From contig NC_043006.1 of assembly GCF_006345805.1 (NCBI RefSeq), positions 29,140,001-29,204,000 of the forward strand: a stretch of 64,000 bases of DNA. The letters run 5' to 3'. Of this stretch, positions 30,460 to 63,227 are shown one piece after another; position 1 is the stretch's first letter, and every line of letters starts with the position of its first letter. The notes under the pieces were generated by a model, which ran no database searches, was not told where the DNA came from, and was given only the letters and a program-made list of their open reading frames with translations. The stretch is from Octopus sinensis. Taxonomy: Eukaryota. Made by a program: the position numbers and the translations under genes.

Positions 30460-30511
<52 letters not shown>

Positions 30512-31635: not shown

Positions 31636-31679
<44 letters not shown>

Positions 31680-32080: not shown

Positions 32081-32125
<45 letters not shown>

Positions 32126-35100: not shown

Positions 35101-36092
35101 GCAATATTTTATTTGAAACCCCATTTTTAGTTATATCTTTCTTTGCAAAAGATTCATTAAATTATTTTCTTGGTAAATTCTAAGAATTTTTATATCAAAC
35201 ATAAATTTCAATAATTTTTAGATTAGAAGTTTTAAACTTTTGAGTTTGATTGCAAGTTTTGTTATTGATAATGAAAATTCAAATTTTGGTATTTTCAGAC
35301 TGAGGTATAAAAGTTTTTTTCTCTTTCACCTCCACAGCATTAGAAGATAAAATACCTGCTGCACATAGCCTGAATATCAACAAAGCAATTTGTGAAGAAG
35401 CAACAGATTATACAAAGCGAGAAAATGTTCTGCGATTACGACTCAAAGATGGTGCTGAATTTTTGCTAGATGCTGGCAGTCAAAAAGAAATGTCAAACTG
35501 GCAGGAGAAGCTTTGTTATTGGGCCAGTAAGTATTTGTTTTATGCCATGAAGTTCTTTTGAGAGAAAGGAATATTAATTTTGCATTTGTTAACATATTTA
35601 AGAAATTTATAGATGCTTTTTCCCTCTCTTTCCATTCTTTATGTAGTTACTGTAAAACCAAATGTAAGACTTGGCAACTTTTTTTTTTCTTTCATTCTTC
35701 AAAATGCTCTTGATTAATTTAAATACAGATGATACCTCAGAAATCTTATACAATGGCAGGCAATGTATGTAGAATTTATAGAACTTATCTAATTTAAGAA
35801 TAACTCTACTATGTCTCAAATCCTAATAAAATATAAAAGAAATACTGTAGTATATTGATGGTTTGGGGTATGACTTTAATAAAATAGTTTACAAAGGCTA
35901 CACTGATTTATTTTATTTCTATGTACCTTTCATTGAAAATTCATGGAGGAAATTGTAAAGAAAAATCAGGTCTCTTAGAGGCATTAGTAGTTTATAAAAC
36001 TGGAATGTACCCCTGGATTTATTTTTATTAAATGTAGATAGTGAAAGGATTCATAGAATCAGAGCAAATGAGATGATTATCCTCAAGGATAT

Positions 36093-45578: not shown

Positions 45579-45612
<34 letters not shown>

Positions 45613-45899
45613 ATGTATGTGTGTGTATGTATGTGTATGTATGTATGTATGTATATTTGCATGTATGTATGTATATTTGTATGTATGTATGTATATTTGT
45701 ATGTATGTATGTATATTTGTATGTATGTATGTATATTTGTATGTATATGTATGTATATTTGTATGTATATGTATGTATATTTGTATGTATATTTGTATGT
45801 ATATGTATGTATATTTGTATGTATATGTATGTATATGTATGTATATTTGTATGTATATGTATGTATATTTGTATGTATGTATGTATATTTGTATGTATG

Positions 45900-45939
<40 letters not shown>

Positions 45940-48900
45940 TGTATGTATATATATATGTATGTATATATATATGTATGTATATATGTATGTATATGTATGT
46001 ATATATATATATATATATTATATATATATATACATACAGAGAGAGAGAGAGAGAGAGAGCTTTTGCTTCTGCACAGTCTCAGTATTGATCAGCTCAAGTC
46101 TACAGTAGAAGATAGTTGTCCAAGGTGACACACAATGGGATTGAACCTGGAACCATATAACTGTGATGCAGTCTTTTGAATCACTCAGTGTCTTAGCTCA
46201 GAAGGCTTGCAACTGAGATATCCCATACATCCATATTCTTAGTCTGCTGCCCATTGAGTATTGTTATGACAGCAACACAGATTGATTTGGTCTCTGTAAG
46301 ATCCACTGGAATTAGTTTGTAGCCCATCATACAATTTGAACATGGTATAGCTCTTAGCGATGCCTGTGTTGTGAGTTATATGTATTCTTGTTGTGTGTTT
46401 TTGTGGAGTCCTGTTTTTATTTTCATTTTTGGATTGACATAGATAGACAGTTTTAAGGACAGAGTATTGTTTTAACGTGCGTGATCCCCTTAATGGTTAC
46501 AAAGGAGATAATCATTTCATCCATAATATGAAGCAAGATTTTAAATTTGAAATTGAAATTAAGAAGTCATAAGAAAAAAAAAAAAGATGCATAGAATTCA
46601 GATATTTCCTGTTTGTTTCACTGACTTCATATGAAATTCTTCAAATGTCTAGTGTTTTGTAACTTTGTATGAACTTTTTCATTCTTTTTAGAAATTATCA
46701 CCATGAAATAACTCGTAACTTATTGATTAAACATTTTATAAAGTGAGACATTTCATTAAATATACAGTCTAGAAGAAATTCATGGAGTGTATTTCCTTTT
46801 TCTTTTCTTCATAGCATGTTAGCAGTTTAGGATTGGAGAGAAAGTTCTTTGTTATTCATATACAGAATAACTGTTTCCTATATTGTTCTGTTGCAGATAT
46901 AACTAAATGTTTGTGTGTTAGACATGTTTTTGTAGAACGTGTGGGAGTTGCAGACAATAGCAACTACAACTTATTCTCATCATCTGTTGTCTTTCAGTTT
47001 CAGCCTTCTTGATATTTTTTATCCCTATCAGTTGGTAATATATATACAACTTGTTATTTCCACATATTTTCTCATAATAACTCTATACTTACACTTGATA
47101 GTAACCAGCTGTAATTTGTAGTGTTGTATGTATAAGGAGTGAATAGGTGTAGGAGTGTCTGTGTGGTAAGTAGCTTGCTAACCAACCACATGGTTCTGGG
47201 TCCAGTCCCACTGCGTGGCATCTTGGGCAAGTGTCTTCTGCTATAGCCTCGGGCCGACCAAAGCCTTGTGGGTGGATTTGGTAGACGGAAACTGAAAGAA
47301 GTCTGTCGTATATATATATATATATGTATGTATGTATGTGTGTCTATATGTTTGTGTGTCTGTATTTGTCCCTCTAGCATTGCTTGACAACTGATGCTGG
47401 TGTGTTTATGTCCCCGTCACTTAGCGGTTCGGCAAAAGAGACCGATAGAATAAGTACTGGGCTTACAAAGAATAAGTTCCGGGGTCCATTTGCTCGACTA
47501 AAGGTGGTGCTCCAGCATGGCCGCAGTCAAAATGACTGAAACAAGTAAAAGAGTAAAATAGTATAAATGAAAGAGGAAGACTATACTCAATGTATATTGT
47601 AGAGTTCATTCATTCACTTACCAGAGATGAGAATATCTCGGGTTGGACAGTTCGGCAGGATCAGGTGAATCACAGGGCTGCATCATGTTCCATGTTAGCT
47701 TTGGCATCCATCTTATAAGATGGATGCCCTTCCTAACACCAACCACCTTACAGTGTGTACAGAATGCTTTTTTCTTACCACCAACATTTGTGGGGTTGCC
47801 AAGTAACTAGCAAAAAAAAGGGGGGTGGGGTGGAAAGCCCTCTTGCCCAAGAGAAGGGTGGAGTTTTGAGAGGTTGTAGTAGTGGCTTTATGCCTGAGTC
47901 AAGCACAGGTAGAGGTGTCATGCTATAGAAAAGATACATAGCTACCCTGCATTTATATAAGGGTGGGTGGGAATATCTGGGAGAAAAAGATGGTGATGAT
48001 GGAGTGCCAGAATAAAATCTTTAAGAGATAATATTGGCAGTGGACCAGGGGGGGGAGTTATATGGAGTGAGGGGAGAGTACCAGATGGTTAGAGATGGAA
48101 GCAGAGGGGGAATGTAGTGAGTGATGAACAGGAGTGGCTATGTGGCTTCATATATTTATATTTCTTTTATGTGTTTCAGTCATTAGACAGTGGCCATGCT
48201 GGGGCATCACCTTGAAGGATTTAGTCAAACAAATTAACCCCAGTACTTATGTTTATTTAAGCCTGGTACCTGTTCTATCAGTTCTTTGGTTGAGCCACTA
48301 AGTTACAAGAATGTAAACAAGCCAACACTGGTTGTCAAGCAGTGGTGGTAGTAAAACTCCAAGATAAACACACACATATATATAAAGATGGGCTGCTTTC
48401 AGTTTCCATCTACTAGATCCACTCACAAGGCTTCGGTTGACCCAGGGCTACAATAGAAGACAGTTGCCCAAGGTGTCACGCAGTTGGACTGAACTCAGAG
48501 CCATATGATTGAGAAGCAAACTTCTCACCACACAGCCATACCTGTGCCCCCACACACAAAAATATTGTAAGCATTATAAATAAACCAGGTTACATCTGGA
48601 CAAAGTTGCATTACTGGTCAGAGGTCAGTGATAAAGATCGTTTAATGCAGAAATATTGTGTTTTGTTTTTTTAATTCCTATAACAATGCACAAACATAAA
48701 TATATATTTGTATTTATCTTCCTCTTGAACTCTGCAGACCTTGATGTAATGATTAAATTAGTATTAACATGCTTATTGCTATTGAACATCAAACATCCAA
48801 TGAGAAATAAGTGTGTTGTGAAGAAAAGAAAGCATTAGCTCAATGCTTAATATTTGTCATCATCATCATCGTTTGATGTCCACCTTCCATGCTGGCATGG

Positions 48901-51145
48901 GTTGGATGGTTTGACAGGAGCTGGCCAGATAGAAGACTGCACCAGACTTTGGTGTCTGTCTGTGGCACTCTGGATGCCCTTCCTCACACTAGTCACCCAG
49001 CAGAGTGGACTGAGTGCTTTTTACATGGCCCCCTGCACTGGTGGGGTCACTAAGTAACTTGCAAGACAAAAGGACCTTTGAGAGGGGAGGGAACTTTGGA
49101 GGAGGTGATCTTGTGTCAGATGATGAAAGATTAGAGTGCGATAGAGAGAGAGAGAAACAGGTGTCTTGCTGTAGAGGAGGTATGTGGTCACCAAGCCAGA
49201 GTTAGCAAGAATGAGGACAGAAATAGGCATGCTGCTGTAAAGGAGATACAGGGTTACCCAACTAGAGAGAAGAGAGAGTGGGGGAAACAGCATGAGTGCA
49301 GGAGAGGGATGGTGGAGAAGTGCCAGGTTATACTAACAAGGATCAGAGCATAGATGTGATGGTAGTAATGTAGTTTGGTCTGTATGGTGAAAATTTTATT
49401 GTAATGTGTGGGTAGAACACAATGCTTCTAGAACTCAGCATGTATAGGTGAAAACTCTTTACATGTTTTGCTATTGTTTGTTCACTTTTACAATGTAATA
49501 AGACAGCACTAAATTGGTGTATGTATATGTATGTGTGTATGTATGTATATGTATGTGTGTATGTATGTATATGTGTGTGTGTGTGTATGTATGTGTATGT
49601 ATGTATATGTGTGTATGTATATGTGTGTATGTGTATATGTGTATGTATATGTATGTGTATGTGTGTATGTATGTGTGTGTATGTATGTGTGTGTATGTAT
49701 GTGTGTATGTGTATGTATGTGGGTGTATGTATGTGTGTGTATGTATGTGTGTGTGTATGCGTGCATGTATGTGTATGATGAGATTGACACAAACTCAACT
49801 GCTGGACCTGATGGATTTCCAACGATCCTTCTCAAATCGTGCAAATGAGCCCTTGCAAAACCGCTACAACTTCTTTTTCAGAGCTTTCTTGCAAGTGGTA
49901 AGCTCCCAGTCAAATTGAAAGAAGGGGTAATATGCCCTATCTATAAGGGAGGAAGCAGAGCAGATGCTAAAAATTATAGGCCTATCTCTCTGACCTCACA
50001 CATCAGCAAAGTCATGGAACGAATAGTCCGCAAGAAACTAATCATGTTCCTTGAAGAAAATGACTTGCTGACTGATACCCAGCATGGATTTCGACCAGGT
50101 AGAAGCTGTCTAACACAGCTCCTTCAACACTATGACTGAGTGTTAAAACAGCTACTAAATAGCTCAAATGTGGATGTGATATATCTCGACTTTGCAAAAG
50201 CCTTTGATAAAGTCGACCATGATCTGTCAGAAACTGCATGATCTCAGCATAGGCGGAGAACTTGGAGAGTGGCTGCACAACTTCCTGAAAGATAGAACGC
50301 AGGCAGTTGTGGCCAATGAAGCCACCTCCAAGGAAACACAAATAACAAGCGGTGTTCCACAGGGCACTGACTTGGGGCCACTGCTGTTCATAGTGGCCCT
50401 TTCAGACATGCCCTCAGTTGCTAAGATGGCCACCCTTGCTAGCTATGCAAATACACTGGCCCAGGAAGAATTGCAATCCCTGAGTCAAAATCCGTGCGTG
50501 ACCACAATCCAGAGAAGATTCACAAAGAAGATCGTCTCTTTGCAACAGCTCAGCTACTGGGAAAGATTGAAACAGCTAAGACTCTACTCCCTGGAGAGAA
50601 GACAGGAGAGGTATGCAGTAATATGTGTCTGGAAGATCCTGGAAGGAATTGTGCCAAATTTTGGCATTGTAAGCTACACCAATGCTAGAACGGGACGACA
50701 CTGCATAGTTCCAAAGATCGCAGCAATGCCATCACGCTTCAGGACCAGCTACTAAAACAGCCTGGGTTTCAAGGGCCCACAGCTTTTTAATATTCTCCCA
50801 AAGAGTCTGAGCAACTTGCACAAAGTAGATGTAGCGGTTTTTAAATCAAAGCTGGACATCTTCCTGTCGAGAGCCCCAGATGAACCTACCTCATGGCAAG
50901 AGGTGCAAATGAGAGTAGCTATGTCAAACTCCATTCTCCACCAAGTGCCACATATTAGAGGAGGCTCTTCATAATGACAGTGTAGCACAAAACGGCGGTG
51001 CATCAGCATGGCTGCAGCTCTGAGCTGATACAAGAAAAACGAAATATATACATATATATATATATATATGTATATACATATACATATATCCATATATGTG
51101 TACGCATGTATATGTGTACGCATGTATATGTATGTATATATATGC

Positions 51146-51179
<34 letters not shown>

Positions 51180-51716
51180 GTATCTATATATATGTATCTA
51201 TATATATGCATGTATATATATGCATGTATATATATGCATGTATATATATGCATGTATATATATGCATGTATATATATGCATGTACATATATGCATGTATA
51301 TATACGCATGTATATTTATACGCATGTATATGTATGTATATATGCGTATGTATATATGCGTATGTATATATGCGTATGTATATATGCGTATGTATATATG
51401 CGTATGTATATATGCGTATGTATATATGCGTATGTATATATGCGTATGTATATATGCGTATGTATATATGCGTATGTATATATGCGTATGTATATATACG
51501 TATATATATATATGTATATATACGTATATATGTATATAAACATATATATATATACGTGTATGTATATATATATATATATATATACGTGTATGTATATATA
51601 TATATATATATATATACGTGTATGTATATATATATAATATATATACGTGTATGTATATATATATAGTATATATACGTATATATGTATATAAACTATATAT
51701 ATATACGTGTATGTAT

Positions 51717-51791
<75 letters not shown>

Positions 51792-51794
51792 GTG

Positions 51795-51873
<79 letters not shown>

Positions 51874-52466
51874 TCAGAGAAGCTACACAAAGAAAATCGT
51901 CTCAATGCAAAATGTCAGCTACTGGGAAAGACTGAAGGTATTAAACCTCTTCTCCCTGGAGCGGAGGCGGGAGAGATATGCAGTAATATACATCTGGAAA
52001 ATCCTGGAGGGTCTTATCCAAACTTTTGGCATTCAAAGTTACTCCACCGCAGAACGGGGCGCCGCTGCGTGGTGCCAAGGATTCCAACATCACCATCAAA
52101 ATACAGGTCCAGATACTGCAACAGCTTGGGTTTCAGAGGACCACAGCTTCAACATCCTCCTAAATGCCTGAGAGACTTACATGGTGTGGATGTGGGTTTC
52201 TTTAAAACTAAACTGGATCTCTTCTTGTGGGAGTCCCAGATGAACCTACCTCACGACAGGAGACACGGATGCGGGCAGCAGCATCGAAACTCCTTGTTGA
52301 TCAAGTGCCACGTATCAGGGTGGATTCACAAACTAGTGTGGCTCATTCAGCGGTGGTGCCCCAGCATGGCCGCGGCCTTCGGCTAAAACATTTTTAAGGA
52401 TTTAAGGATTTATATATATATACGTGTATGTATATATATATATATAATATATATATATATATCGTG

Positions 52467-52501
<35 letters not shown>

Positions 52502-52505
52502 CGTG

Positions 52506-52554
<49 letters not shown>

Positions 52555-52557
52555 GTG

Positions 52558-52608
<51 letters not shown>

Positions 52609-53107
52609 GTGTATGTATATATATATGTGTATGTATATATATGTGTATGTATATGTATGTATATATATATGTGTATGTATATGTATGTATATATGTGTAT
52701 GTATATATATGTGTATGTATATGTATGTATATATATATGTGTATGTATATGTATATATATGTATGTATATGTATGTATGTATATATATATGTATCTATAT
52801 GTATATATATGTATGTATATGTATGTATACGTATGTATATGTATGTATACGTATGTATATGTATGTATACGTATATGTATGTATATATATGTATGTATAC
52901 GTATATGTATGTATACGTATATGTATGTATACGTATATGTATGTATACGTATATGTATGTACGTATATGTATGTATACGTATATGTATGTATACGTATAT
53001 GTATGTATATATATTATATATATGTGTATATATATGATATATACGTATATATACGTATATATTGATATGTGTATATATATATAATATATATATATATATG
53101 TATATTG

Positions 53108-53157
<50 letters not shown>

Positions 53158-54220
53158 CGTATGTGTATATACTGTGTATATATATATATACGTATATATA
53201 TTATATATATCGTATATATATATATACGTATGTGTATATACGTGTATATATATATATACGTATATATATATATACGTATAGGAGGATCAGAATACGTATA
53301 CGTATACGAGGATACGTATACGAGATACGTATACGAGGATCAGAATCGAAATCGGGATACGTATACAAGGATCAGAATCAAAATCGATCAATGGAAATTG
53401 CGGATGTGCTACCAGTGCCGGTGGCATGTCGAAACTCTGCTTGTGAAGACCCATTGAGGCAAGTGAGGATCAGAATCGAAATCGATCAATGGAAATTGCA
53501 GATGTGTTACCAGTGCCGGTGGCATGTAAGAGAACTTTCGTTTCGCGACCGTTGCCAGCACCGCCCCGTTTCGTGTCCGTTGCCAGCCTCGCCTCGCCCT
53601 CGTGCCGGTGGCACATAAAAAGCACCATCCGTTCGTGGCCGTTTGCCAGCTCTGTCTGGCACCAGTGCGGGTGGCACGTAAAAAGCACCCACTACACTCA
53701 CGGAGTGGTTGGCGTTAGGAAGGGCATCCAGCCGTAGAAACACTGCCAGATTTGACTGGGCCTGATGAAGCCTTCTGGCTTCACAGACCCCAGTAGAACC
53801 GTCCAACCCATGCTAGCATGGAAAACGGACGCTAAATGATGATGATGATGATGATATATATACGTGTATATATATATATATACATGTATATATATATGTG
53901 TATATATATATGTATATATATGTATATACATACGTGTATATACATATGTGTATATATATATATGTGTATATATATGTATATATATGTATATACATACGTG
54001 TATATATATACGTGTATATATATACGTGTATATATATGTATATATATATACGTGTATATATATGTATGTATATATATGTATATATATACGTGTATATATA
54101 TACGTGTATATATACGTTATATATCATATATATATGTATATATACATATATATGTACGTATATATATCTATATATATAGTATATATACATATATATGTAC
54201 GTATATATGTATATATGTAC

Positions 54221-54259
<39 letters not shown>

Positions 54260-54923
54260 ATATATATATATATATATATATATGTACGTATATATATATA
54301 TGTATATGTTGTATAGTATATATATGTATATGTACGTATATATAATTATATATATATATATATATGTACGTATATATATATATATAATATATATATGTAG
54401 TATATATATATATAATATATATATATATATGTACGTATAATATAATATATATATATATAATATGTACGTATATATATATATATATATATGTACGTTAATA
54501 TATAATATATGTACGTATATATATATATATATACATATGTACGTATATATATATATATATATACATATGTACGTATATATATATATATACATATGTACGT
54601 ATATATATATATATATACATATGTACGTGTATATATATACATATATATACATGTATGTATGTATACCTGTGTATGTATACGTGTATATATATGCATATAT
54701 ATCTCTTTTCTTTTTTACTTTCTTTTACTTGTTTCAGTCAATTGACTGTGGCCATGCTGGAGCACCGCCTTTAGTCGAGCAAATCGACCCCGGGACTTAT
54801 TCTTTGTAAGCCCAGTATATCTATCGGTCTCTTTTGCCGAACCGCTAAGTCACGGGGACGTAAACACACCAGCATCGGTTGTTAAGCAATGCTAGGGAGA
54901 CAAACACAGACACACAAACACAT

Positions 54924-54982
<59 letters not shown>

Positions 54983-57900
54983 TACGACAGGCTTCTTTCA
55001 GTTTCCGTTTACCAAATCCACTCACAAGGCATTGGTCGGCCCGGGGCTATAGCAGAAGACACTTGCCCAAGATGCCACGCAGTGGGACTGAACCCAGAAC
55101 CATGTGGTTGGTTAGCAAGCTACTTACCACACAGCCACTCCTGCGCCTATATATGTATATATATAATATATTATATATTATATATATATATATATACGTA
55201 TATATGTATATATTTATACATATATATATATATACGTATATATACGTATATATACGTATATATACGTATATATACGTATATATTTATATATACATATACG
55301 TATATATGTATATATTTATATATACATATACGTATCTATATATATATTTATATATACATATACGTATATATGTATATATTTATATATACGTATATATGTA
55401 TATATTTATATACACATATATATGTATATATTTATATATATATATATATATACGTATATATATACGTATATATGTATATATTTATATATACATATACGTA
55501 TATATGTATATATTTATATATACGTATATATGTATATATTTATATATACGTATATATGTATATATTTATATACACATATATATGTATATATTTATATATA
55601 CATATATGTATATATACGTATATATATATATATTTATATATATACACATATATACGTATATTTACACGTATAGATACGTATATATACGGATATGCATATA
55701 TATATTTGGTTTATACATAACATTTGAAATTCCTGTTGAACTGTTTACATTTAAATACTGTGAACATGCAGATAAATTTTATGAGGACAGAACTTGAATA
55801 ATAATCTCTCTTGTATTTCAACATCGTTTAACGTCCTTCAAAAAAAATTACTTGGGTCAATTTGTTTGATTAAAATTCTTCAAGGCTGTGCCCCAGCATG
55901 GCCACAGTCTAATGACTGAAGCAAGTAAACAATAAACACTGTGTGTGTGTCTTTTACAGGTTTCATTTGTTAGGCTGGGGCCATACTGGGAGTATAATCT
56001 TCAAAAATTTTTAGTCAAACAAATCAAGCCTACTACTTATACTTTTAAGCCTGGTATTTATTGTCTCTTTTGCCAAACCATTAAATTATGGGAAAATAAA
56101 CACACCAACTCTGGTTGTCAAGTGGTGGTGGGGGACAAATATAGACACAAACATTCACACACACACAGATATATGTATATACAACAGGCTCCTTTCAGTT
56201 TCTATCTACCAAACAATATCACAATGCTTTGGTCAGCTTGACACCGTAGAAGACACTTGCTCAATGGGACTATGTGAGTGCGTGTGAAATATGCATGTAT
56301 ATAATTTCTTTTTTGTTCACCTTAGATTTATATAGTCTCTGTTCAGTCAAAATTTTTTGTGGTAGGTGGATCTCTTTCAAATAGTTAGGTTATAATGAAA
56401 AGGTATTATCATAGGCGGTGAGCTGGCAGAAACATTAGAACGCTGGGCGAAATGCTTAGCGGCATTTCGTCTGTCGTTACGTTCTGAGTTCAAATTCCGC
56501 CATGGTCGATTTTGCCTTTCATCCTTTCGGGGTCAATAAATTAAGTACCGGTTACGCACTGGGGTCGATGTAATCGACTTAATACCTATGTTTGTCCTTG
56601 TTTGTCCACTCTATGTTTAACCCCTTGTGGGTAATAAAGAAATAGGTATTATCATAGATTATTATAGATTAAATTTGGAGTCATGTTATTTATCAGAATC
56701 CATTCACTCGCAATCAGCTGTGTCTGTTTAACTGTATCAGCTTCATATCTTTATATGCTGATATTTGTTTCCAGTTATTCACATAAACAAGTCTGAGCTG
56801 TTTGATAAACAGGGAAGTTATCTCACAAGTGGGGCTTGTTGACAAGAAAGACATCCAACTAAAGAGAACTCTGCCCCCAAAATACACTCATCTTGCCCAT
56901 GATAACATAGAAAAGTAAACATGAGCATAGAAAAGTTTCAAGCTTTGTGCTATCAGCATGCAATACTAAATGCAATACACAATAAATACACTGGACTTGG
57001 AGGGATTGCAATCCCAGAGGCTCAATCAGTGCGAGACCTGGGCATTTACATGAGTAATGATGCAACCTTTTATGTGCATGTTGCTAAATTGGCAATGAAA
57101 TGTAGGCGGCTGACCAGATGGATTCTTAGAACTTTTAGAACAAGAGACCAGGAAACCATGATGGTCCTCTGGAGGACACTTGTCCTAAGCCACTTTGAAT
57201 ATTGCTCTCAGCTATGGTCACCAACCAGTGTCAAATTAATCTCAGAACTTGAGGCAATCCAACAAAGAAGATAGCCTCTATGCAGCATATAAGCTATTGG
57301 GAAAGACTCTATTCCTTAGAGCGTAGGTGAGAAAGATATGCCATAATATACATCTGGAAGATCCTAGAAGGACTTGTCCCAAACTTTGGCATCGAGAGTT
57401 ACACAAATGCCAGAACTGGGCGCCACTGCATAGTGCCAAGGACTCCAAATTTGCCATCAAGATGTAGGACAAGATACTGCAATAGCCTGGGCTTCAGAGG
57501 TCCATAGCTCTTCAATATCCTCCCGAAGGACCTGAGAGACCTGCATGGGGTGGATGTAGGTGTCTTCAAAATAAAGCTGAACCTCTTCCTGTCAGGTGTC
57601 CCAGATGAACCAACTTCGCGGCAGGAGGTGCAGATGAGGACAGCTGCATCAAACTCTCTCATGCACCAAATGTTCAATTGCTAAAAAGCATTTATGAAAT
57701 AATATCATGTAGCAACACCAAATAGTAGTGCCCCAGCAGGGCCACAGCTCGTGAGCTGAAACTAGATGAAATAAATAAAAAATTTTTTAAATGAAATGAG
57801 GTTGATAACTGCAGCAGTGATGACAGAAATGACAGTTCTGTAGAAAATATAGTTAAATGCAGAGGTTTAGAATGTCAGAGGAGAAAGAAATAGTAAAACT

Positions 57901-60900
57901 CTAGATTACACTAGTTGCACTACTAAGTCTAGTTTTAGTTTTTGCTTTTTTGAGTCCAGATTCATTCAGGTTGAAATGCCTTATGTTCAACTTAATATAA
58001 TTGTACCAGTAATATACACTACCTCTCAAGCTCTACTGCATCTCTTTCCTACAAAAATTAAGTTTACAGCTTTAAAAATGTTGCTATATTATGTTCTCCC
58101 AGGTAAAGACGGTTTCATATCCAAAGAGACTTCTGATTCCTGGGATGCCACCAGTAATTACAGTTCATTGTCGCAAAAACCCCCAGAAAATAATGGTTTG
58201 TATATTTCATGCATTTTTTTTTTTAATCTTTCAAAGAAACTCCACTTACTTTCTCACATCACAGTTCATCCTATCATCCAAAGAAGAAAAAAACTGACAT
58301 TTCTATTAATTTTATTTCAGTTAAGAGTTGTTAGCCACAGGAAATAAAATTTGAATACAGAACACACAGAACAGGAATTAGTACCACAAGGCCTCTTATC
58401 TGATACTCTAACAGCTCTGCTAATTCACTAACTTTATTTATCATGCAGAAAATATGAAAGGCAGAGTTGAATTTTGATAGATTTTAGCTCAGTCTATAAG
58501 AAATTGGAACAAGTATCTCAAAGCATTGAGAGTATTAATCACCTTTTAAGTGGGTGCAGTATACAAGCACAAAAGGAGTACAAGTGCAGACATGACTGAA
58601 CAGGAAAAAGAGTGATTTGGGATATTAGACAAATATGTGGATTCAAAACGACAGAAAATTAGTGTGAACACAAAACAGATAAAAAATGAGAATTACAAGA
58701 TCTTATGGGACTTTGCCATAAAAACTGACCATACTATTGAGGCACATGATTAGAGCATAGTCATGAGGTAGTGAGTTTGATTCCTGGATTGGGTTGTGTG
58801 TTGTGTTCTTGAGCAAGTCACTTTATTTCACAGTTCACTCAGCTGTAGAAGTGAGTTGTGATGCCAAGCTGTATTGGCTTTTGCCTTTTCCCTTGAATAA
58901 CATCACATAGGAATGTCTGGGCTACTGCTGGTCTTCCATAAACAACCTTGCCTGGACTTGTACCTCAGAAGGGAACTTTCTAGGTGCAATTTTGAGATTT
59001 GAAGAGACTCCAGACCTCAAGATATAATAGCTGCTAACTAAATTAGCATGCACTAGAATAATAATAAACTTGAAAGCAGCAAAAAGCCACTTTCTATTGT
59101 CAAGAAAGTTTGAAAATTTGCAAGGGAACTTGGCATTAACCCTGAAAACAAGCAAACTGCAAAAAAAGAACAGGTAGAAACAAATTGAGGTGTAGTGGAG
59201 CCAGAAGCTTCTGCATGGACAGTATATACTTCGAAGTCAAAATGCTGATGTAAACCAAGCAACAACCCATCAGTGGTTGAGAAGTTTGTGGCTGAAAGTA
59301 GAGACTGAAGGTTTTGTATTGGCAGCCCAAGATCAAAGCTTTCTTACAACTAAACTACCAGGCTAACATTCTTCAAGATGGTTCTGACCCTAAATGCAGA
59401 TTCTGAGATACATTTAATGAAACAACAGACCAGTCCTGTGCTGACACCAAATGAATACAAAAATCACCACAATAGGGTAGGATAGTTTTTACATTAGAAA
59501 ATATGTAAACACTACAAAATGAGCACTCACGCTTACTGGTATGAACATCAACTTGAGCCAGTTGTTGGAGGTAAAAATGTCACTATCCTCTGGGATTTTC
59601 CAGTCAATACTGACACAACGATCCAGGCTAATTGACTAGACATAATTATTAAAGACAGAGAAGAAAACACTTGTAGATTAATAGAAGTGTTCCCACTGAT
59701 AAAAATTTATCTGAAACGGAATTTGACAAATTAAGTAAATGTAAGGACCTGGAAATTGAAATACAAAAGATCTGGCATCTTAAAGCGAGAACTGTTCTTG
59801 CAATTGTAGGTGCCCTATGTATGATAAAAAATGGATGTCAGACATATAGATAATATCTCAGGAGAACCATGCCTCAGAGAAATCTAAAAGATTGCGCTGA
59901 CAAGTACTGCCCACATCCTTAGAAAAACCCTATTCATTTGTATTACATGAAGATATTTCACTACTGTTTCTGCCTCTTCCCCTCCCCAAGCTTTCAGTCA
60001 AACTGTAATTTCTGTTATCCTTCACTCACCCCAGGACACTGGATGTGTCTTGGCAAGTGATTGTAACAAACATACAGATTAAATTAGTTTTACTGAATTA
60101 TTTTAGTCCCTTAGCATAAGAGTTGCTGAACTATAACTAAGGCATACAAAATTGTGTGTTTAGAGGTCAGTGTATTTTGATTCCAGTTGTGAATGTATAT
60201 AAAGAAAAATTTGTGTGTGTTCATGACAACAATTTATCAATTTTCTCTCATATAAGATTTAGAAGTATGATTCATAAGACTTCAACTTTAGGTATTTAAA
60301 AAAAAATTATTTTCTGTATATTTTAAATGACAATATAATTTTTCCTTCTTCTTGCAGACATTGAAGCACTTCAAAGGGTAAATATTTTGTTCAGTTCTTT
60401 CTCTTAAGTTTCAAGCAGTTGTCATTGGAGTGTGTGTGCATGCATGCAATATTTTGCTTAATGATTCCTTGCTTTGATACATTTTTTTTTTTATTTTAAA
60501 AATAGAAACATAATAGTTAACAACAAAATAAATACTAATAATTGCTTTAAAAGTTTAATGACCTAATGTTACTAAGGTGTTTGTTCATTTTGTTTGTCAT
60601 TTAATTAGTTTTCTTGTTGATGATTGGTGCAGAGACTCTTCCTGCTGTGTCTAAAATAATGTGCCAATTTCAGTATTTGATTCTCAGAAGAGGAGAATTT
60701 GGTAAAAAAAAGAAAAAAAAGCAAGACTTGCTCTGTTCAGTTGGGCTTACATGCTTGTCCCACTTATGGTCGTGAATGTTTTGTTAATGACTGAAAGAGT
60801 ATGATAGTTATGGAATGGGATTCCTCTGGAGGGTCTCTAGAGTGACATTAACCAACAGGGTACACAGCTTGAAGACCAGGGTGTCTCTCTGGGTCAAGCC

Positions 60901-61989
60901 ACTACTTCACATTGAAAGGACACAGCTCCAGTGTTACAGACATGTGATCAGAATATTACAGGAAAAAATTGCAAGATGGAGTCATCAAGCCAAGTCAACT
61001 GGCAAGAGACCTTGGGGTAGACCAAGAAACAGATAGCTGGAGTAATATCTAATGGTCATGCTTGAGAATCCAATTGAAAATGAAAAGTCTAATGACAGAT
61101 TCTTCTGATAGGATTCTATGGAAGAAGTGGCTGAGCACTCTCCCTCCGTTGCCCTCCCAAAAACAGTGATGGGAGAAAATGGATAGAGGGTGGTGTCTGC
61201 TGTTAGGCACCATGGAGGTTTCTTGGTCTGTTGCTTCTTTTTATATTTATGTGTTTAAGAATTGTCAGAGATATACAGTGAAATACTTGCATACTATTAA
61301 CTAAAAAAAAAGGTATAATATATTATTATAATATATAAGCTACAAACTAACTAGAGTACAAATCATAAAAATCTTTATCAAATTTTTAGTACTTTCTTTC
61401 CTTTTCTTATGATAAAGATATATAACAAGTGGGGAGGGGGTGATTATGGTTTATTGAAGAGTAATGTATGCTGAATATAAAAAGTTTATGCTCTAGGAAC
61501 TGAGGCAGAATGAAATAACAAGGTATTAAGGAGGACTTAGCAGAGGGGCTAACTTTTGTTTGGATGGGTTAAAAGGTAATGCTTTTGTTGTGGTCAAGTG
61601 GTTAAAACATTTTTAGTCAGTTTTGTCAGGGTTTTCCCTGGCTCTTCCTCTTATCTTATAAAAAATTACAGCTTGTAACAGTAATGTTTGGATTTCCCAT
61701 TTAGCTGCTGTTAAATGTGTTATTTGGTGATTATTGGTGATTAATTGATTCACTTGTATGTTATGTACATGTATTTCTTCTACATATCTGTGTAAATTTC
61801 TTTCAGCGGCCTATGTCATCCAGCTCAGTTGAAAGTACCACAGATCTTGGTAGTCATCAATTCATGCCTCAGACATTTGAAGATGATGATGATAATTCAA
61901 AACTAGAAAAGGAGAAAAAAAAGAAAGGGTTTTCTTCTTTTTTCAGAAAGAAGAAAGACCACAAAGAAGTGAAGAAAGATAAAAATTAA
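1194..61989 (+). CDS. SPTBN5: Beta-heavy spectrin (karst/sma-1/SPTBN5-like), 3' part; 25 exons, 5' end lies left of the window
   Basis: Manual splicing of 25 GT-AG exons gives one uninterrupted 4074-nt frame. It encodes spectrin repeats (e.g. [35 protein letters not shown]), a terminal partial repeat, a PH domain ([31 protein letters not shown]) and a tail. Alpha-like repeats followed by a PH domain fit beta-H rather than alpha or conventional beta spectrin. Confidence 0.9.
1684..1830 (+). CDS. SPTBN5: beta-H spectrin exon 2 (0-0)
   Basis: aaattcag; [30 protein letters not shown]...DIVQ; gttagt; 147 nt. Confidence 0.95.
1926..2090 (+). mobile_element. SINE family A, 5' half
   Basis: B-box-like ggttcagtccc and gaaactgaaagaagcc shared with full copies. 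Confidence 0.8.
2102..2215 (-). mobile_element. Penelope-like terminal repeat remnant
   Basis: Minus strand gcctggagggtatatcagccgaaacgtt resembles the stem II/GAAAC half of PLE hammerhead motifs; CUGANGA core absent. Confidence 0.4.
2965..3102 (+). CDS. SPTBN5: beta-H spectrin exon 3 (0-0)
   Basis: catctag; [16 protein letters not shown]...LKEAFE; gtaagt; 138 nt. Confidence 0.93.
3377..3445 (+). mobile_element. Solo 3' end of a CR1-group LINE
   Basis: ggcggtgccccagcatggccacagctcatgagctaaaactagat plus A-rich tail matches the LINE end at 57724-57780. Confidence 0.75.
3771..4035 (+). mobile_element. Degenerate family B-type SINE
   Basis: ccatccaacccatgtcagcat...(tga)n tail. Confidence 0.75.
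4057..4670 (-). mobile_element. Family E non-autonomous retroposon (CT-rich body, B-type tail)
   Basis: Same tail; body aligns with 48857-49345. Confidence 0.7.
5150..6340 (-). mobile_element. CR1-group LINE reverse transcriptase fragment, decayed
   Basis: [31 protein letters not shown] and SKAFD motifs across frameshifted ORFs; [13 protein letters not shown] upstream. Confidence 0.9.
6776..7172 (+). mobile_element. SINE family A, full length
   Basis: A-box tggctgtgtgg, B-box ggttcagtccc, internal microsatellite, tail gactgaaaccagtaaaa. Confidence 0.88.
7297..7422 (+). CDS. SPTBN5: beta-H spectrin exon 4 (0-0)
   Basis: tttaacag; [31 protein letters not shown]...KKNQ; gtattg; 126 nt. Confidence 0.93.
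8458..8588 (+). CDS. SPTBN5: beta-H spectrin exon 5 (0-2)
   Basis: atttcag; [12 protein letters not shown]...[18 protein letters not shown]; gtaaaa; 131 nt. Confidence 0.92.
8712..9594 (-). mobile_element. Mariner (Tc1/mariner) non-autonomous, internally deleted element
   Basis: [22 protein letters not shown]...[12 protein letters not shown] region; [17 protein letters not shown]-terminal region; degenerate TIRs tacaaagtggtatc / tatgaggtggtccc. Confidence 0.88.
9736..9851 (-). pseudogene. Full-length 5S rRNA pseudogene fused to a retroposon tail (9686-9732)
   Basis: Minus strand gtttatgaccatatcacactgaaagcaccagttct...ttaagcagcgttgagcttagttagtactt...tgggaaacctaggtgctgtaaac aligns end to end with metazoan 5S rRNA, with many transitions. 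Confidence 0.88.
9911..10097 (+). CDS. SPTBN5: beta-H spectrin exon 6 (2-0)
   Basis: cctttcag; FESLSEPF...[19 protein letters not shown]...LLKKFQ; gtatgg; 187 nt. Confidence 0.94.
10245..10430 (+). repeat. Unclassified interspersed repeat family F (related pieces at ~15175, 17355, 20925, 33610, 41790)
   Basis: Shared motifs such as atttctagca, gagctgatctgga and ccagccatgac on either strand. Confidence 0.5.
11443..11643 (+). CDS. SPTBN5: beta-H spectrin exon 7 (0-0)
   Basis: ttttgtag; [16 protein letters not shown]...LQNSLEAQK; gtaggt; 201 nt. Confidence 0.94.
12237..12543 (-). mobile_element. tRNA-derived SINE family C
   Basis: Head ggaggtgcaatggcccagtggttagg...gcggtttcaattccc (A/B boxes) followed by a non-tRNA body ending cacgtgatcacatg. 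Confidence 0.85.
13320..13590. repeat. (TC)n-rich polypyrimidine low-complexity tract
   Basis: Repeated ctctctctct blocks. Confidence 0.8.
13651..13737 (+). mobile_element. SINE family A, 3' fragment
   Basis: ggcggtgctccagcatggccgcagtcgaatgactgaaacaagtaaaag. Confidence 0.85.
13981..14351 (+). mobile_element. SINE family A
   Basis: Head, body and tail align with 31677-32081. Confidence 0.85.
14538..14633 (+). CDS. SPTBN5: beta-H spectrin exon 8 (0-0)
   Basis: aatacag; [32 protein letters not shown]; gtatct; 96 nt. Confidence 0.94.
14905..15039 (+). CDS. SPTBN5: beta-H spectrin exon 9 (0-0)
   Basis: attttag; [16 protein letters not shown]...[12 protein letters not shown]; gtaaga; 135 nt. 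Confidence 0.93.
15492..15674 (+). CDS. SPTBN5: beta-H spectrin exon 10 (0-0)
   Basis: ctttcaag; [14 protein letters not shown]...[12 protein letters not shown]; gtaaga; 183 nt. Confidence 0.92.
16153..16417 (-). mobile_element. SINE family B, 5'-truncated
   Basis: Close match to 53587-53855 in reverse. Confidence 0.88.
16827..17018 (+). CDS. SPTBN5: beta-H spectrin exon 11 (0-0)
   Basis: attccag; [13 protein letters not shown]...[14 protein letters not shown]; gtaaaa; 192 nt. Confidence 0.94.
17781..17936 (+). CDS. SPTBN5: beta-H spectrin exon 12 (0-0)
   Basis: gtttccag; [26 protein letters not shown]...HNGLE; gtaaga; 156 nt. Confidence 0.94.
18596..18835 (+). mobile_element. SINE family A, degenerate and deleted
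   Basis: ggttcagtcccactgc and ttagcagttcagcaaaagag motifs. Confidence 0.65.
19136..19353 (+). CDS. SPTBN5: beta-H spectrin exon 13 (0-2)
   Basis: tttttcag; [11 protein letters not shown]...[10 protein letters not shown]...YFNEYREL; gttagt; 218 nt. Confidence 0.94.
21257..21446 (+). CDS. SPTBN5: beta-H spectrin exon 14 (2-0)
   Basis: ttctttag; [23 protein letters not shown]...NGHFLSEE; gtatat; 190 nt. Confidence 0.94.
22398..22496 (+). CDS. SPTBN5: beta-H spectrin exon 15 (0-0)
   Basis: ttctgtag; [33 protein letters not shown]; gtacgt; 99 nt. Confidence 0.93.
23062..23378. repeat. Foldback inverted repeat (146/142-bp arms, 29-nt loop); possible MITE
   Basis: Arms 23062-23207 and 23237-23378; 6 mismatches and one 4-nt indel by manual alignment. 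Confidence 0.92.
23676..23821 (-). mobile_element. SINE family A, 5' half
   Basis: Reverse complement of the family A head. Confidence 0.82.
24306..24488 (+). CDS. SPTBN5: beta-H spectrin exon 16, terminal partial repeat (0-0)
   Basis: tctttag; [17 protein letters not shown]...[31 protein letters not shown]; gtttga; 183 nt; resembles the beta-type tetramerisation partial repeat. Confidence 0.94.
25040..25318. repeat. Degenerate (TCTA)n/(TC)n micro/minisatellite
   Basis: Repeated ctatctatcattctct units. Confidence 0.8.
25486..26145 (+). repeat. Identical 197-bp direct repeat (25486-25682 and 25949-26145) flanking exon 17
   Basis: Base-by-base comparison shows no differences. Confidence 0.95.
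25717..25839 (+). CDS. SPTBN5: beta-H spectrin exon 17, charged linker (0-0)
   Basis: cattatag; [14 protein letters not shown]...[10 protein letters not shown]; gtcagt; 123 nt. Confidence 0.88.
26146..26518 (+). mobile_element. RTE-clade LINE 3' end with (TGA)n tail
   Basis: Open frame [22 protein letters not shown]...[11 protein letters not shown]...LLLWKP...STTVEQ, then tgatgatgatg. Confidence 0.9.
26840..27221 (+). mobile_element. Tc1/mariner (maT/DD37D-like) deletion derivative
   Basis: 21-bp inverted repeats 26844-26864 and 27197-27217; TA flanks 4 nt outside them; [11 protein letters not shown]...VDCRGG transposase C-terminus. Confidence 0.85.
28169..28233 (+). CDS. SPTBN5: beta-H spectrin exon 18 (0-2)
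   Basis: tttcccag; [21 protein letters not shown]; gtaagt; 65 nt; its phase links exon 17 to exon 19. Confidence 0.86.
28669..28985 (-). mobile_element. Penelope-like element reverse transcriptase fragment
   Basis: [17 protein letters not shown] and [18 protein letters not shown]...[12 protein letters not shown] resemble PLE RT (PKIHKPNNPGRPIVS). Confidence 0.8.
29779..29885. mobile_element. 107-bp MITE with TTAA flanks (Kolobok-like RR..YY ends)
   Basis: TTAA at 29775 and 29886; TIR gggcgctggagggacagtgcc vs aggcactggagggacaatgcc. Confidence 0.6.
29914..30097 (-). mobile_element. SINE family B-type 3' part
   Basis: ccatgctggcatgggttggac and ggatgcccttcctaatgccaacc. Confidence 0.82.
30206..31005 (+). 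mobile_element. SINE family A with an internal B-type fragment; 5' 325 bp tandemly duplicated
   Basis: Heads at 30206 and 30531; the non-microsatellite parts of the two units are identical. Confidence 0.88.
31677..32081 (+). mobile_element. SINE family A, full length, flanked by (TA)n
   Basis: Complete head, body and tail. Confidence 0.9.
34610..35058 (+). CDS. SPTBN5: beta-H spectrin exon 19, linker plus N-half of PH domain (2-1)
   Basis: ccctccag; ...[44 protein letters not shown]; gtatgg; 449 nt. Confidence 0.93.
35338..35526 (+). CDS. SPTBN5: beta-H spectrin exon 20, C-half of PH domain (1-1)
   Basis: ctccacag; ...[38 protein letters not shown]; gtaagt; 189 nt. Confidence 0.94.
36661..37100 (+). 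mobile_element. SINE family B variant
   Basis: gccagtggcacataaaaagcac units and (tga)n tail. Confidence 0.85.
37105..37245 (+). mobile_element. tRNA-derived SINE family D, degenerate
   Basis: ggtggttagctggcagaatc and gagttcaaattc; similar to 56414. Confidence 0.7.
37320..38013 (+). mobile_element. Family E retroposon (CT-rich body, B-type tail)
   Basis: Pyrimidine-rich body ending ccatccaatccatgccag...aatgatggtgatg. Confidence 0.65.
38371..38484 (+). CDS. SPTBN5: beta-H spectrin exon 21, acidic tail (1-1)
   Basis: gtttgcag; [37 protein letters not shown]; gtgaaa; 114 nt; phase compatible. Confidence 0.8.
39090..39462 (+). mobile_element. SINE family A
   Basis: Head to tail alignable. Confidence 0.85.
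39581..40031 (-). mobile_element. SINE family A, full length
   Basis: Reverse complement of a complete copy. Confidence 0.9.
40795..40941. mobile_element. piggyBac-like MITE (short variant)
   Basis: TTAA flanks; tccttttgttgcc...ggtatcaaaaggg. Confidence 0.75.
41263..41452. mobile_element. piggyBac-like MITE
   Basis: TTAA TSDs at 41259 and 41453; perfect 13-bp TIR cccttttgttacc. Confidence 0.85.
44151..44342 (+). CDS. SPTBN5: beta-H spectrin exon 22, S/T/P-rich tail (1-1)
   Basis: tactaacag; [15 protein letters not shown]...SPSPRQRHP...PTNLP; gtaagt; 192 nt. Confidence 0.8.
44899..46058. repeat. (TG)/(TATG)n microsatellite complex interrupted by a PLE end
   Basis: Alternating purine-pyrimidine runs; gtatgtatatttgtat-type higher-order units at 45650-45895. 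Confidence 0.95.
45214..45482 (+). mobile_element. Penelope-like terminal region carrying a minimal hammerhead-like motif
   Basis: tcttt-ctgttga-a-gagcgtagtctc-gaaac-gta-aaaga at 45347-45384. Confidence 0.55.
47146..47558 (+). mobile_element. SINE family A, full length
   Basis: Complete copy. Confidence 0.9.
47630..48130 (-). mobile_element. Family E retroposon, degenerate
   Basis: ggatgcccttcctaacaccaacc followed by a purine-rich (plus strand) body. Confidence 0.6.
48160..48548 (-). mobile_element. SINE family A
   Basis: Reverse complement head and tail. Confidence 0.85.
48857..49345 (-). mobile_element. Family E retroposon
   Basis: Aligns with 4057-4480. Confidence 0.75.
49774..51044 (+). 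mobile_element. CR1-group LINE RT to 3' end, with internal deletions
   Basis: [66 protein letters not shown]; 3' motif at 50994. Confidence 0.92.
51873..52411 (+). mobile_element. CR1-group LINE 3' fragment
   Basis: [32 protein letters not shown]; 3' motif at 52352. Confidence 0.9.
53281..53855 (+). mobile_element. SINE family B with a stuttered 5' junction
   Basis: Repeated gaggatcagaatc restarts; standard B tail. Confidence 0.85.
54721..55149 (-). mobile_element. SINE family A, full length
   Basis: Near-consensus reverse complement copy. Confidence 0.9.
55846..56270. mobile_element. SINE family A fragments, tail-to-tail (plus-strand 3' piece, then minus-strand copy)
   Basis: gccccagcatggccacagtctaatgactg, then reverse-strand body. 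Confidence 0.65.
56414..56643 (+). mobile_element. tRNA-derived SINE family D with target-site duplication
   Basis: A-box ggtgagctggcagaa, B-box gagttcaaattcc; direct repeat aggtattatcatag at 56401-56414 and 56644-56657. Confidence 0.9.
56920..57785 (+). mobile_element. CR1-group LINE 3' fragment
   Basis: [34 protein letters not shown]; 3' motif at 57724 and A-rich tail. Confidence 0.92.
58103..58195 (+). CDS. SPTBN5: beta-H spectrin exon 23 (1-1)
   Basis: ttctcccag; [30 protein letters not shown]; gtttgt; 93 nt; open in the required phase. Confidence 0.68.
58612..59945 (+). mobile_element. R4/Dong-clade (restriction-like endonuclease) LINE fragments with an intervening SINE-like piece (~58753-59005)
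   Basis: [23 protein letters not shown] zinc knuckle, [26 protein letters not shown]. Confidence 0.85.
60358..60377 (+). CDS. SPTBN5: beta-H spectrin 20-nt micro-exon 24 (1-0)
   Basis: tttccttcttcttgcag acceptor; (D)IEALQR; gtaaat donor; supplies the phase change needed to read the last exon in its long frame. Confidence 0.72.
60760..61190 (+). mobile_element. RTE (Rex3/Expander-like) LINE 3' fragment, decayed
   Basis: [36 protein letters not shown]. Confidence 0.82.
61807..61989 (+). CDS. SPTBN5: beta-H spectrin last coding exon 25
   Basis: tttctttcag; [10 protein letters not shown]...[36 protein letters not shown]; TAA at 61987-61989. Confidence 0.85.
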   Translation, partial: RPMSSSSVESTTDLGSHQFMPQTFEDDDDNSKLEKEKKKKGFSSFFRKKKDHKEVKKDKN

Positions 61990-62744
61990 TCCATTCTCCT
62001 GTGTTCCTGTCTGTTCATTCCCCCCCCCCCCGATTCATCTGCCAGTAACTGCTGTACAGTTTTAGGACTTTCTTTCTCTGCTGGCCGTAGAGAAATGTCA
62101 AATCAAGATTTATAATTTGAAGCAACACATTCCAAATAAGCCTTATGCAGGATTTTGTTTTTTTTGTTTTTGTTTTGTTTTTTTGACAGAATTTTCTAGA
62201 ATTCCATTCCAAGTTTTCCTCTCTTTCTACATGGCATCAATTAAAGAAAATGTTCTATGATTTAACATTTACTTCACCTCAAATTTCAATCCCTATCAAG
62301 AATTTTTTTAACATCTTTTATTTTTAACCCATAAATTATTTCACACGAGCATTGTTTCTAATTATCAAAAAGGGGTCAGCTAAAAAAATATCCTTGGAGA
62401 AGATTAATCTTAAAACTGAGTTTGGATCCACTGTAGATTTATACCAAAATCCAAGCTCATGTATAAATGATGGCCAAACTCATCTATTTGTTTTATAAGA
62501 TGAACAGATTCATCTGGTACTTTTCAAACTGACTTTTCATTAATTTTTTTTTTAATTCTTAAATTTCAAAGGTGCAAGGAAATCTTTTTTTTTTTCTTTT
62601 TTTTTTTAATTTTTATTTTTAAGAAAAAATTTTGTTTTGATGTTTTTGTTTCTCAGATTTTATTAATTGTGTGTGTGTTTTTGTTACTCAAATTTTAGTA
62701 CTTTATAAACAAAACGCACATACATAAACATTAATATTCATCCT

Positions 62745-63227
62745 CTTAATGTCCCCATGCTTTTCTATGCTTGCATTGAGTTGGATGGCAGATTTTCCAC
62801 ACCAGATGCCCTTTCCTGTATCCACACAAAGCAACAGACATGCTTTTGCCAAATATTGGAAAGGAATGACAATGGCAGTCATTTACAACAATCACATGAT
62901 GTCAAGTCAAAGGTCAGAGCTATACTCACACATATTATATGTGTCTTTCACTGAATCCTTGTGAATGCTGGAAACTGAAAGAAGCATCCTATATGTATGT
63001 GCATGCTTGTATTACTGTCTCCTTGCCTCAACACTGTGTGACAGTTGTAAATGAGTCTCATTGTTATGCAAGCAGTGTTATTCATTTCCAAATTTTCATG
63101 AAAACTTATCTGGTCATGGGAAAATATTACCTCATTTGGATATGAGGGTTGGCAACAAGAACGGCATCTGGCTGTAGAAAATCTACCTCAACAAATTCCA
63201 TAGAAGCAGGGAAACATGGACATTAAA
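62745..63227. mobile_element. Retroposon pieces in the putative 3' UTR: minus-strand tail 62745-62830, plus-strand SINE 62960-63227
   Basis: ggcatctggctgtagaaaatct...catggacattaa present on both strands; plus copy has the family A gaaactgaaagaagc motif. Confidence 0.65.

Follow-up and report, generated by a model that had tools for sequence, protein, structure and literature searches.

Towards the 3' end of a spectrin gene in Octopus sinensis, within what would otherwise be a single 3.6-kb intron, lies a segment of just 20 nucleotides (nt) on which the reading frame of the protein's last residues appears to depend. The window in which it was studied, the whole stretch of 64,000 nt from contig NC_043006.1 (assembly GCF_006345805.1, positions 29,140,001 to 29,204,000 of the forward strand, numbered here from its first letter), holds the 3' part of the gene, whose assignment to the beta-heavy spectrins (karst / SMA-1 / SPTBN5 type) is supported by comparison with its relatives. 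Very probably, to judge from its place and phase in a related gene, this segment, at 60358-60377, is a true coding micro-exon that the beta-heavy spectrin gene already had in the ancestor shared by cephalopods and bivalves. The gene was rebuilt across the window with a related transcript as guide, which places 23 exons ahead of the micro-exon, and from the approach to the PH domain through to the stop codon the following features can be laid out.

25717-25839, forward strand: exon, ending in phase 0.
28169-28233, forward strand: exon of 65 nt, phase 0 to 2.
34610-35058, forward strand: exon of 449 nt, phase 2 to 1, encoding a linker and the first half of the PH domain; placed by its splice sites, a Pfam PH_9/PH match and tblastn to the relative's protein P0037.
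35338-35526, forward strand: exon of 189 nt, phase 1 to 1, whose second half of the PH domain completes it.
38371-38484, forward strand: exon of 114 nt, phase 1 to 1, encoding an acidic segment; a near-identical open reading frame (ORF), P0149, exists in a close relative.
44151-44342, forward strand: exon of 192 nt, phase 1 to 1, encoding a disordered Ser/Pro-rich segment; a related ORF, P0141, with 85% identity, comes from another octopod-like assembly.
58103-58195, forward strand: exon of 93 nt, phase 1 to 1, with acceptor gttctcccag and donor ATAATG/gtttgt, ending in PPENN plus one leftover G.
60291-60357, forward strand: 3' splice-site region of the micro-exon, with a 66-nt AG-free zone, the pyrimidine tract tttttccttcttctt, UGC at 60353-60355 and AG at 60356-60357.
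60358-60377, forward strand: micro-exon of 20 nt, ACATTGAAGCACTTCAAAGG, phase 1 to 0, flanked by acceptor atttttccttcttcttgcag and donor gtaaat and encoding, with the carried-over G, DIEALQR.
60430-60446, forward strand: a (GU)4 run, then two overlapping UGCAUG hexamers (Rbfox-type), 60-69 nt 3' of the micro-exon donor.
61807-61989, forward strand: coding part of the terminal exon, phase 0, behind acceptor tttctttcag; 60 codons, RPMSSSS...KDKN, with stop TAA at 61987-61989.
61830-61832, forward strand: stop TGA reached when the micro-exon is left out; the product ends AAYVIQLS and no exon junction lies downstream.
61909-61956, forward strand: core of the basic-aromatic tail, K-rich, GFSSFF, K-rich.

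The exon at 58103-58195, the 23rd in the window by count, opens with GKDGF in common with the RNA-derived homologue P0037, and is the last of four (35338-35526, 38371-38484, 44151-44342 and 58103-58195) that follow the start of the PH domain and that all, on hand reading, enter and leave in phase 1. Skipping any of these exons therefore cannot reach the phase 0 of the terminal exon, and a segment with a length of 2 mod 3 is required. The micro-exon is of that length and would convert phase 1 of the upstream exons to phase 0 of the terminal one, so that the ribosome would read DIEALQR and then a terminal exon supplying 60 amino acids (...PPENN-DIEALQR-RPMSSSS...) and ending in a lysine-rich, phenylalanine-containing motif. 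When it is skipped, translation stops after 8 codons within the last exon and the 3' untranslated region gains only 157 nt; since its stop lies in the last exon, such an mRNA should be stable. A previous sequence-only reading of this DNA had proposed both that the 20-mer supplies the needed shift and that skipping leads to AAYVIQLS and a stop inside the last exon. Its coordinates and translations were all reproduced to the base, and geometry and frames proved to be as it described.

The decisive support for the micro-exon is comparative, and comes from the pearl oyster Pinctada imbricata, whose protein KAK3093468.1 (GCA_033119305.1) was aligned exactly, in spliced form, onto its own genomic locus (L002). 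From before the PH domain through the stop, exon count and phases match between the two species.

Exon before the PH domain: 92 nt in Pinctada, 65 nt in octopus, phase 0 to 2 in both.
First half of the PH domain: 596 nt in Pinctada, 449 nt in octopus, phase 2 to 1 in both.
Second half of the PH domain: 189 nt, phase 1 to 1, in Pinctada and octopus.
Next three exons: 78, 297 and 81 nt in Pinctada, 114, 192 and 93 nt in octopus, all phase 1 to 1.
Micro-exon: 23 nt in Pinctada, 20 nt in octopus, phase 1 to 0 in both.
Terminal exon: phase 0 in Pinctada and octopus.

Further upstream, the two species share exon lengths of 187, 201, 192, 190, 99 and 183 nt. In the oyster the micro-exon is annotated at L002:23155-23177 (ATCACATCACAGATGAAGTGAAG, acceptor tttatattgcag, donor gtgcgt) and encodes DHITDEVK; the terminal exon behind it encodes VRPKPSPRSPRPISEPP...KSMFGFLKKKKDKDHDEHK, including RPISEPP...KSMFGFLKKKKDKD, and the protein ends ...DHITDEVKVRPKPSPRSPRPISEPP...KEKKHKSMFGFLKKKKDKDHDEHK... 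Both micro-exons stand just before the terminal exon and carry phase 1 to phase 0. Each has a long AG-free zone and a TTGCAG acceptor that places UGC at -5 to -3, and each is followed about 1.3 kb on by a terminal exon with RP(I/M)S and a K-rich tail, in the oyster G/M-F-G-F-L-KKKK; in the oyster, as in the octopus, skipping leads to an early stop. They differ in their 3 nt of length and in peptide, in the start of the terminal exon, which begins 10 residues earlier in the oyster (VRPKPSPRSP), and in the downstream UGCAUG hexamers, which Pinctada is without. Two micro-exons that share their ordinal position and their phase change within an otherwise collinear gene can reasonably be read only as orthologues, and by that orthology the exon would predate the split between bivalves and cephalopods. 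More widely, intron positions are strongly conserved between window 9911-25839 and L002 6491-13547, where octopus exons of 96, 135 and 183 nt make up a single oyster exon of 414 nt and octopus exons of 156 and 218 nt correspond to oyster exons of 183 and 191 nt.

The splice signals by themselves make a case for the micro-exon that is suggestive, not conclusive. Candidates were taken as AG...GT segments of up to 150 nt, open in the incoming frame and 2 mod 3 in length; among the 212 phase-1-to-0 candidates in intron 58196-61806 the 20-mer scores highest (13.6, the next 10.7), and it also outscores all 1,366 candidates from three upstream introns and, over 26 kb of introns, every other candidate. 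Under position weight matrices (PWMs) derived from the 23 remaining acceptors and 23 remaining donors of the same gene, its acceptor reaches 12.1 bits. The tract upstream is 84% pyrimidine and adjoins the AG. Within the 100 nt before the exon there is a single UGC, which falls, in octopus and Pinctada alike, at -5 to -3 (uugcag), a position at which 1 of the 41 other acceptors of the two genes has TGC. The AG-free zone measures 66 nt in the octopus, against 23-65 nt for other internal exons, and 74 nt in Pinctada, each among the longest in its gene. The neighbourhood (60100-60640) is single-copy within the window. Recognition would most likely rest, first, on the strong 3' splice site with its long pyrimidine tract (rank 2 of 24 acceptors), second, on a distal branch point implied by the AG-free zone and, third, on the UGC beside the AG. 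As a separate observation, an internal AG at 60365-60366 would give an 11-nt exon, CACTTCAAAGG (ALQR), likewise phase 1 to 0, behind a weak acceptor (rough score -1.3), and the junction of the relative represented by P0037, ...YT-DITR-YSSS..., would, from its transcript alone, suit an 11-nt exon starting ACATT.

The class of spectrin was judged in part by size, beta-heavy proteins having ~30 repeats and ~3,500-4,600 amino acids against ~2,100-2,600 for conventional beta-spectrins; with only the 3' part in the window, the size evidence is indirect. Further marks of the class, N-terminal CH domains, an SH3 domain among the repeats and no ankyrin-binding repeat, belong to parts of the gene beyond the window. 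The first exon of the window aligns at residue 2127 of the 5'-open ORF of a relative's mRNA (L006), which runs to 3,072 amino acids and is followed by a 405-residue ORF from PH domain to tail; fused after removal of 38 nt, the two give at least 3,513 residues. In an exhaustive profile search the best full-length matches are 3,754-4,656 amino acids long and proteins of 2,050-2,600 score lower, while an arthropod homologue contig carries ~3,800 residues of summed spectrin ORFs and N-terminal CH domains. A PH domain follows the last repeat (Pfam PH_9 3.9e-19, PH 3e-11) and matches beta-spectrin PH domains in PDB; that of the closest insect homologue is distant from the PH domain of Drosophila conventional beta-spectrin, 1DRO (45.8 bits). 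The weak 1DRO match, the arthropod homologue and the lengths of the relative and the best matches led us to reject a conventional beta-spectrin, and the sizes of the relatives, the PH domain and the CH-bearing homologue together bear out the beta-heavy identity that had been assigned from the letters of the window.

Between two octopods the long frame of the last exon is, on the pattern of substitutions, under coding constraint. In L001, a genomic contig of a related octopod (Logan SRR11869384) that aligns to window 60652-62935 only, the terminal coding frame is 94.5% identical over 183 alignable bases, with flanks at 72-77%; a 24-nt indel is in frame, and a single synonymous change is found across the first 13 and last 29 codons. 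Outside the octopods the same tail is read in frame with the PH domain in P0002, an RNA-derived ORF on an intron-less 4.9-kb Logan contig (...DEEEVQMRIRTPSSASGSRPMSEPP...GVFGFLKKKKDKD, ending ...DEEEVQMRIRTPSSASGSRPMSEPPGTEEKHEKDKRKSHGVFGFLKKKKDKDHKEHK...), which, being 57% identical to the Pinctada protein, is probably from a mollusc, and in P0037/P0153, a cephalopod-like transcript for which four runs gave the same assembly (...YTDITRYSSSEV...). RPMS/RPIS and the tail are common to the octopus terminal exon and to P0002, P0003 and P0037. Octopod conservation and mollusc homologues thus uphold the earlier proposal that this frame is coding.

The tail itself is strongly basic, its last 30 residues holding 14 K/R, 5 D/E and 3 F, and its form is widely met with. 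Beta-spectrins of beta-heavy size end in like manner (...KKKGFSLFKRNSKRN, ...KDKKGVFGGLFSKKKK, ...GGVFRIFSKKKSKHQN, ...RKAFSIFKRSSKANKF), as do those of conventional size (...NKSVFKKFFGKKE, ...KRRSFFTLKKN), and in many animals the closing motif, within the last ~25 residues, can be written as a K/R run, G/S, V/F, F/L, two free positions, F/L, F/L and K/R-K-K (P0157, P0166, P0179, P0183, P0188, P0178, P0208, P0213 and P0087 among them; 61909-61986 in the octopus). What the micro-exon gates is, judged from these endings, a family-wide beta-spectrin C-terminal motif. No published description of this closing motif was found in the literature searched, and Pfam and PDB searches of the tail returned no meaningful relatives. 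Basic-aromatic clusters, the MARCKS effector domain among them, offer an analogy from which we infer that the tail may help the adjacent PH domain to hold the protein at acidic membranes by electrostatic and hydrophobic contacts. The MARCKS effector domain and the MARCKS-related tail of adducin are lysine clusters with Phe and Ser that have acidic lipids and calmodulin as ligands and respond to serine phosphorylation as a switch; the octopus tail shares with them the lysine cluster with interspersed Phe and Ser at or near the C-terminus of a membrane-skeleton protein, and differs in having no detectable sequence homology to them. Drosophila beta-heavy spectrin is known to associate with the membrane through its C-terminal region, which includes the PH domain (PMC11361641).

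Several observations weigh against a conserved coding micro-exon at 60358-60377. In mononucleotide shuffles of the intron, 11 of 300 equal or exceed the score of the 20-mer, so its strength alone is moderately unusual, and its donor, gtaaat (60378-60383, exon end AGG), is mid-range at 5.3 bits, rank 16 of 24. The peptides at this place (DIEALQR, DEEEVQM(R), (T)DEVK(VR)) are only loosely alike, and it is by position and phase that orthology is argued. The one arthropod beta-heavy gene examined (L004) has no micro-exon here, its counterpart of RPxS and the tail being encoded within one larger terminal exon, from which it follows that the micro-exon is not pan-bilaterian. The alignment to the second octopod ends 275 nt short of the micro-exon, and the protein collection holds no transcript-derived product of the octopus locus, the tail query having returned only a 66-residue ORF from the related genomic contig. 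Exact look-ups of the window ORFs 60156-60299 and 61813-61989 in the same collection gave no match. As for the last intron itself, a transposon-derived stretch at 60652-61272 is found at the same place in the related octopod (L001:1266-1824, 72.5% identity), which makes the insertion old, and it is because the copy in L001 extends further 5' that this contig never reaches the micro-exon.

If the micro-exon is real, it may be always included or be regulated. Conservation of the tail argues for inclusion as the default, and inclusion would appear to be the default form in the octopus; a switch is no more likely than constitutive or default inclusion, since the tail is conserved across beta-spectrins and in frame in every relative examined that is RNA-derived or annotated, and we give constitutive or near-constitutive inclusion roughly an even chance. 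A regulated exon would be included only where an activator is present (neuronal Srrm234 eMIC, or Rbfox in neurons or muscle) and skipped elsewhere, leaving a stable mRNA for a tail-less protein that ends AAYVIQLS; this toggling of the tail between tissues, raised already by the sequence-only reading, is a prospect to be taken seriously though it falls short of even. Most eMIC micro-exons preserve the frame, and beta-heavy spectrin acts mainly in the epithelia of flies and worms, where eMIC activity is absent; these epithelial roles, like the spread of the tail motif across beta-spectrins, argue for inclusion outside neurons. In the data compared, a skipped transcript was seen in no species, and every RNA-derived relative has the tail in frame. 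Regulation is favoured, nonetheless, by the lone UGC shared by octopus and oyster at a position so rarely occupied in the other acceptors, by the length of both AG-free zones, by the UGCAUG pair downstream in the octopus and by the skip-frame stop that falls in the last exon.

These signals can be set against exons dependent on SRRM3/4 (eMIC), which in vertebrates and Drosophila are marked by UGC near the 3' splice site, a long AG exclusion zone and a UC-rich tract (PMC8797185; bioRxiv 10.1101/2024.09.17.613571). It also speaks for regulation that, in the same gene family, Drosophila karst has an eMIC-dependent 63-nt exon (chr3L:3367153-3367215) and a neural 330-nt exon (3366444-3366773) with the same flanking junctions (PMC8797185; bioRxiv 10.1101/2024.09.17.613571). 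All three published marks are present at the octopus micro-exon, which at 20 nt also falls below 27 nt, and the sequence-only reading was right to name an upstream UGC as a known feature of SRRM3/4 micro-exons. The octopus tract, however, abuts the AG and its acceptor is the second strongest in the gene, a strong and conventional 3' splice site unlike the weak, distal layout of SRRM4-dependent exons, and the fly karst exon is frame-preserving and, at 63 nt, longer than the octopus one. TGCATG occurs three times in total in the 3.6-kb octopus intron and not at all in the corresponding Pinctada intron; since the hexamers are thus not conserved, Rbfox control is kept as a weak lead.

Other systems in which splicing near the 3' end alters a C-terminus throw further light on the octopus exon. 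Vertebrate beta-I and beta-II spectrins have short and long C-termini, with or without the PH domain, made by alternative terminal exons or splice sites; there as in the octopus, splicing at the 3' end alters which membrane-binding elements are carried, but in vertebrates the PH domain itself is added or removed, whereas the octopus micro-exon sets the frame for the last 60 residues alone. A 20-nt neural micro-exon of Bak1, also of non-triplet length and also shifting the frame when included, reportedly destroys the frame and triggers nonsense-mediated decay (NMD; Lin et al. 2020), while in the octopus inclusion creates the conserved frame and skipping truncates. There is also a class of non-triplet splicing events that give alternative C-terminal lengths, of which 136 are recognised in C. 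elegans, including a non-triplet micro-exon of tnt-3 (Nat Commun 2026, PMC13247117). Such events are documented and often regulated in neurons, which again favours a switch. In tnt-3, as in the octopus, a short non-triplet exon near the 3' end picks the frame and one form stops soon and resists NMD, and the octopus exon fits this class with its 20 nt and a skip frame that stops with no NMD-eliciting junction. The two differ in that both worm isoforms are demonstrated, the octopus case supporting through its relatives the inclusion-type product only, and in that tnt-3 recodes a long dual-coding region, against 8 codons in the octopus.

Three minor explanations remain. It is improbable that another or an additional exon within 58196-61806 supplies the shift, for example a counterpart of a 114-nt segment, VVRHQKLEANGDEF..., in the decapod-like relative: P0037 does have ~37 extra residues between its exon-23 homologue and the DITR-YSSSEV junction, but tblastn gave no match to that segment within the octopus intron, and the remaining phase-1-to-0 candidates score at least 3 bits lower. 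As the extra segment is a multiple of three, it would in any case not replace the frame function of the micro-exon. Very improbable, too, is a direct splice from exon 23 to the AG at 61827-61828, by which the micro-exon would go unused and the long frame be restored as ...PPENN-VESTTDL... The count of bases allows it (G + TT GAA AGT gives VES in that frame), but this AG scores -4.0 bits by the gene's acceptor PWM against +4.0 for 61807, lies downstream of a good AG, and would delete RPMSSSS, whose RPMS/RPIS core is kept in P0002 and Pinctada; the match of octopus RPMS to RPMS/RPIS in other molluscs supports the 61807 acceptor over it, and Pinctada solves the same phase problem by a micro-exon. 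On PWM score and RPMS conservation the 61828 acceptor was rejected, in agreement with the preference for the strong 61807 acceptor expressed when the sequence was first read. Least credible of all, and hardly to be entertained, is that the protein truly ends AAYVIQLS, with the long frame as 3' untranslated region and the 20-mer as a chance AG...GT, for although candidates of similar score arise in ~4% of shuffled introns, octopods conserve the protein of the long frame, the 24-nt indel in it being in frame, and beta-spectrins of molluscs, arthropods and others have C-termini homologous to it, and the skip-frame peptide is not conserved (by hand translation Pinctada would give GASQALTPFTTPYL and then a stop).

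Elsewhere in the gene, a second short segment is of interest. All four transcript assemblies of the cephalopod-like relative contain 38 nt, TGGATAACGAGAGATTCAATGTTGCGTTCAGACTTTAG (L005:132-169, L006:9175-9212, L007:5375-5412 and L008:6048-6085), inserted after the homologue of octopus exon 28169-28233 and before that of 34610-35058; the segment breaks the frame and ends the protein, ...RKKDDEWITRDSMLRSDFSS and then a stop, ahead of the PH domain, and it is its removal that yields the single ORF of at least 3,513 amino acids. From the transcripts it looks like a second non-triplet mini-exon that truncates the C-terminus. No octopus counterpart, which would lie in 28234-34609, was found in the window. 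The octopus introns also hold reverse-transcriptase-like ORF fragments of retroelements, at ~5112-5923 (reverse strand), 49849-50752 (forward) and 56906-57680 (forward), and the 13.8-kb intron before exon 23 contains several kilobases of TA/CA-type microsatellite (~44750-46130 and 51000-55800).

Nothing here amounts to a new mechanism: the oyster orthologue is already publicly annotated, and both non-triplet C-terminal exons and UGC micro-exons are known. A bolder proposal, which we offer tentatively and consider rather doubtful, is that the deeply retained micro-exon is an on/off switch of eMIC/Srrm234 type (UGC-dependent) for the tail, with neurons or another class of tissue making tail-plus protein and the rest tail-less protein, and that, together with the 38-nt exon of the relative, molluscan beta-heavy spectrin grades its membrane-binding C-terminus by several non-triplet mini-exons. 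For annotation the matter is immediate, for exons of ~20 nt commonly escape gene finders and standard RNA-seq aligners, and a missing micro-exon truncates octopus beta-heavy spectrin by 67 residues and loses a motif found throughout the beta-spectrins. Whether the C-terminal region receives its last basic-aromatic element depends on one exon of 20 nt. Should its inclusion prove constitutive, it would be an ordinary though neatly conserved micro-exon; should its skipping be regulated, it would represent a compact and deeply conserved case of frame-switch splicing controlling the attachment of the spectrin skeleton to the membrane, and would offer a concrete target for asking whether the bilaterian eMIC programme runs in cephalopod nervous systems.

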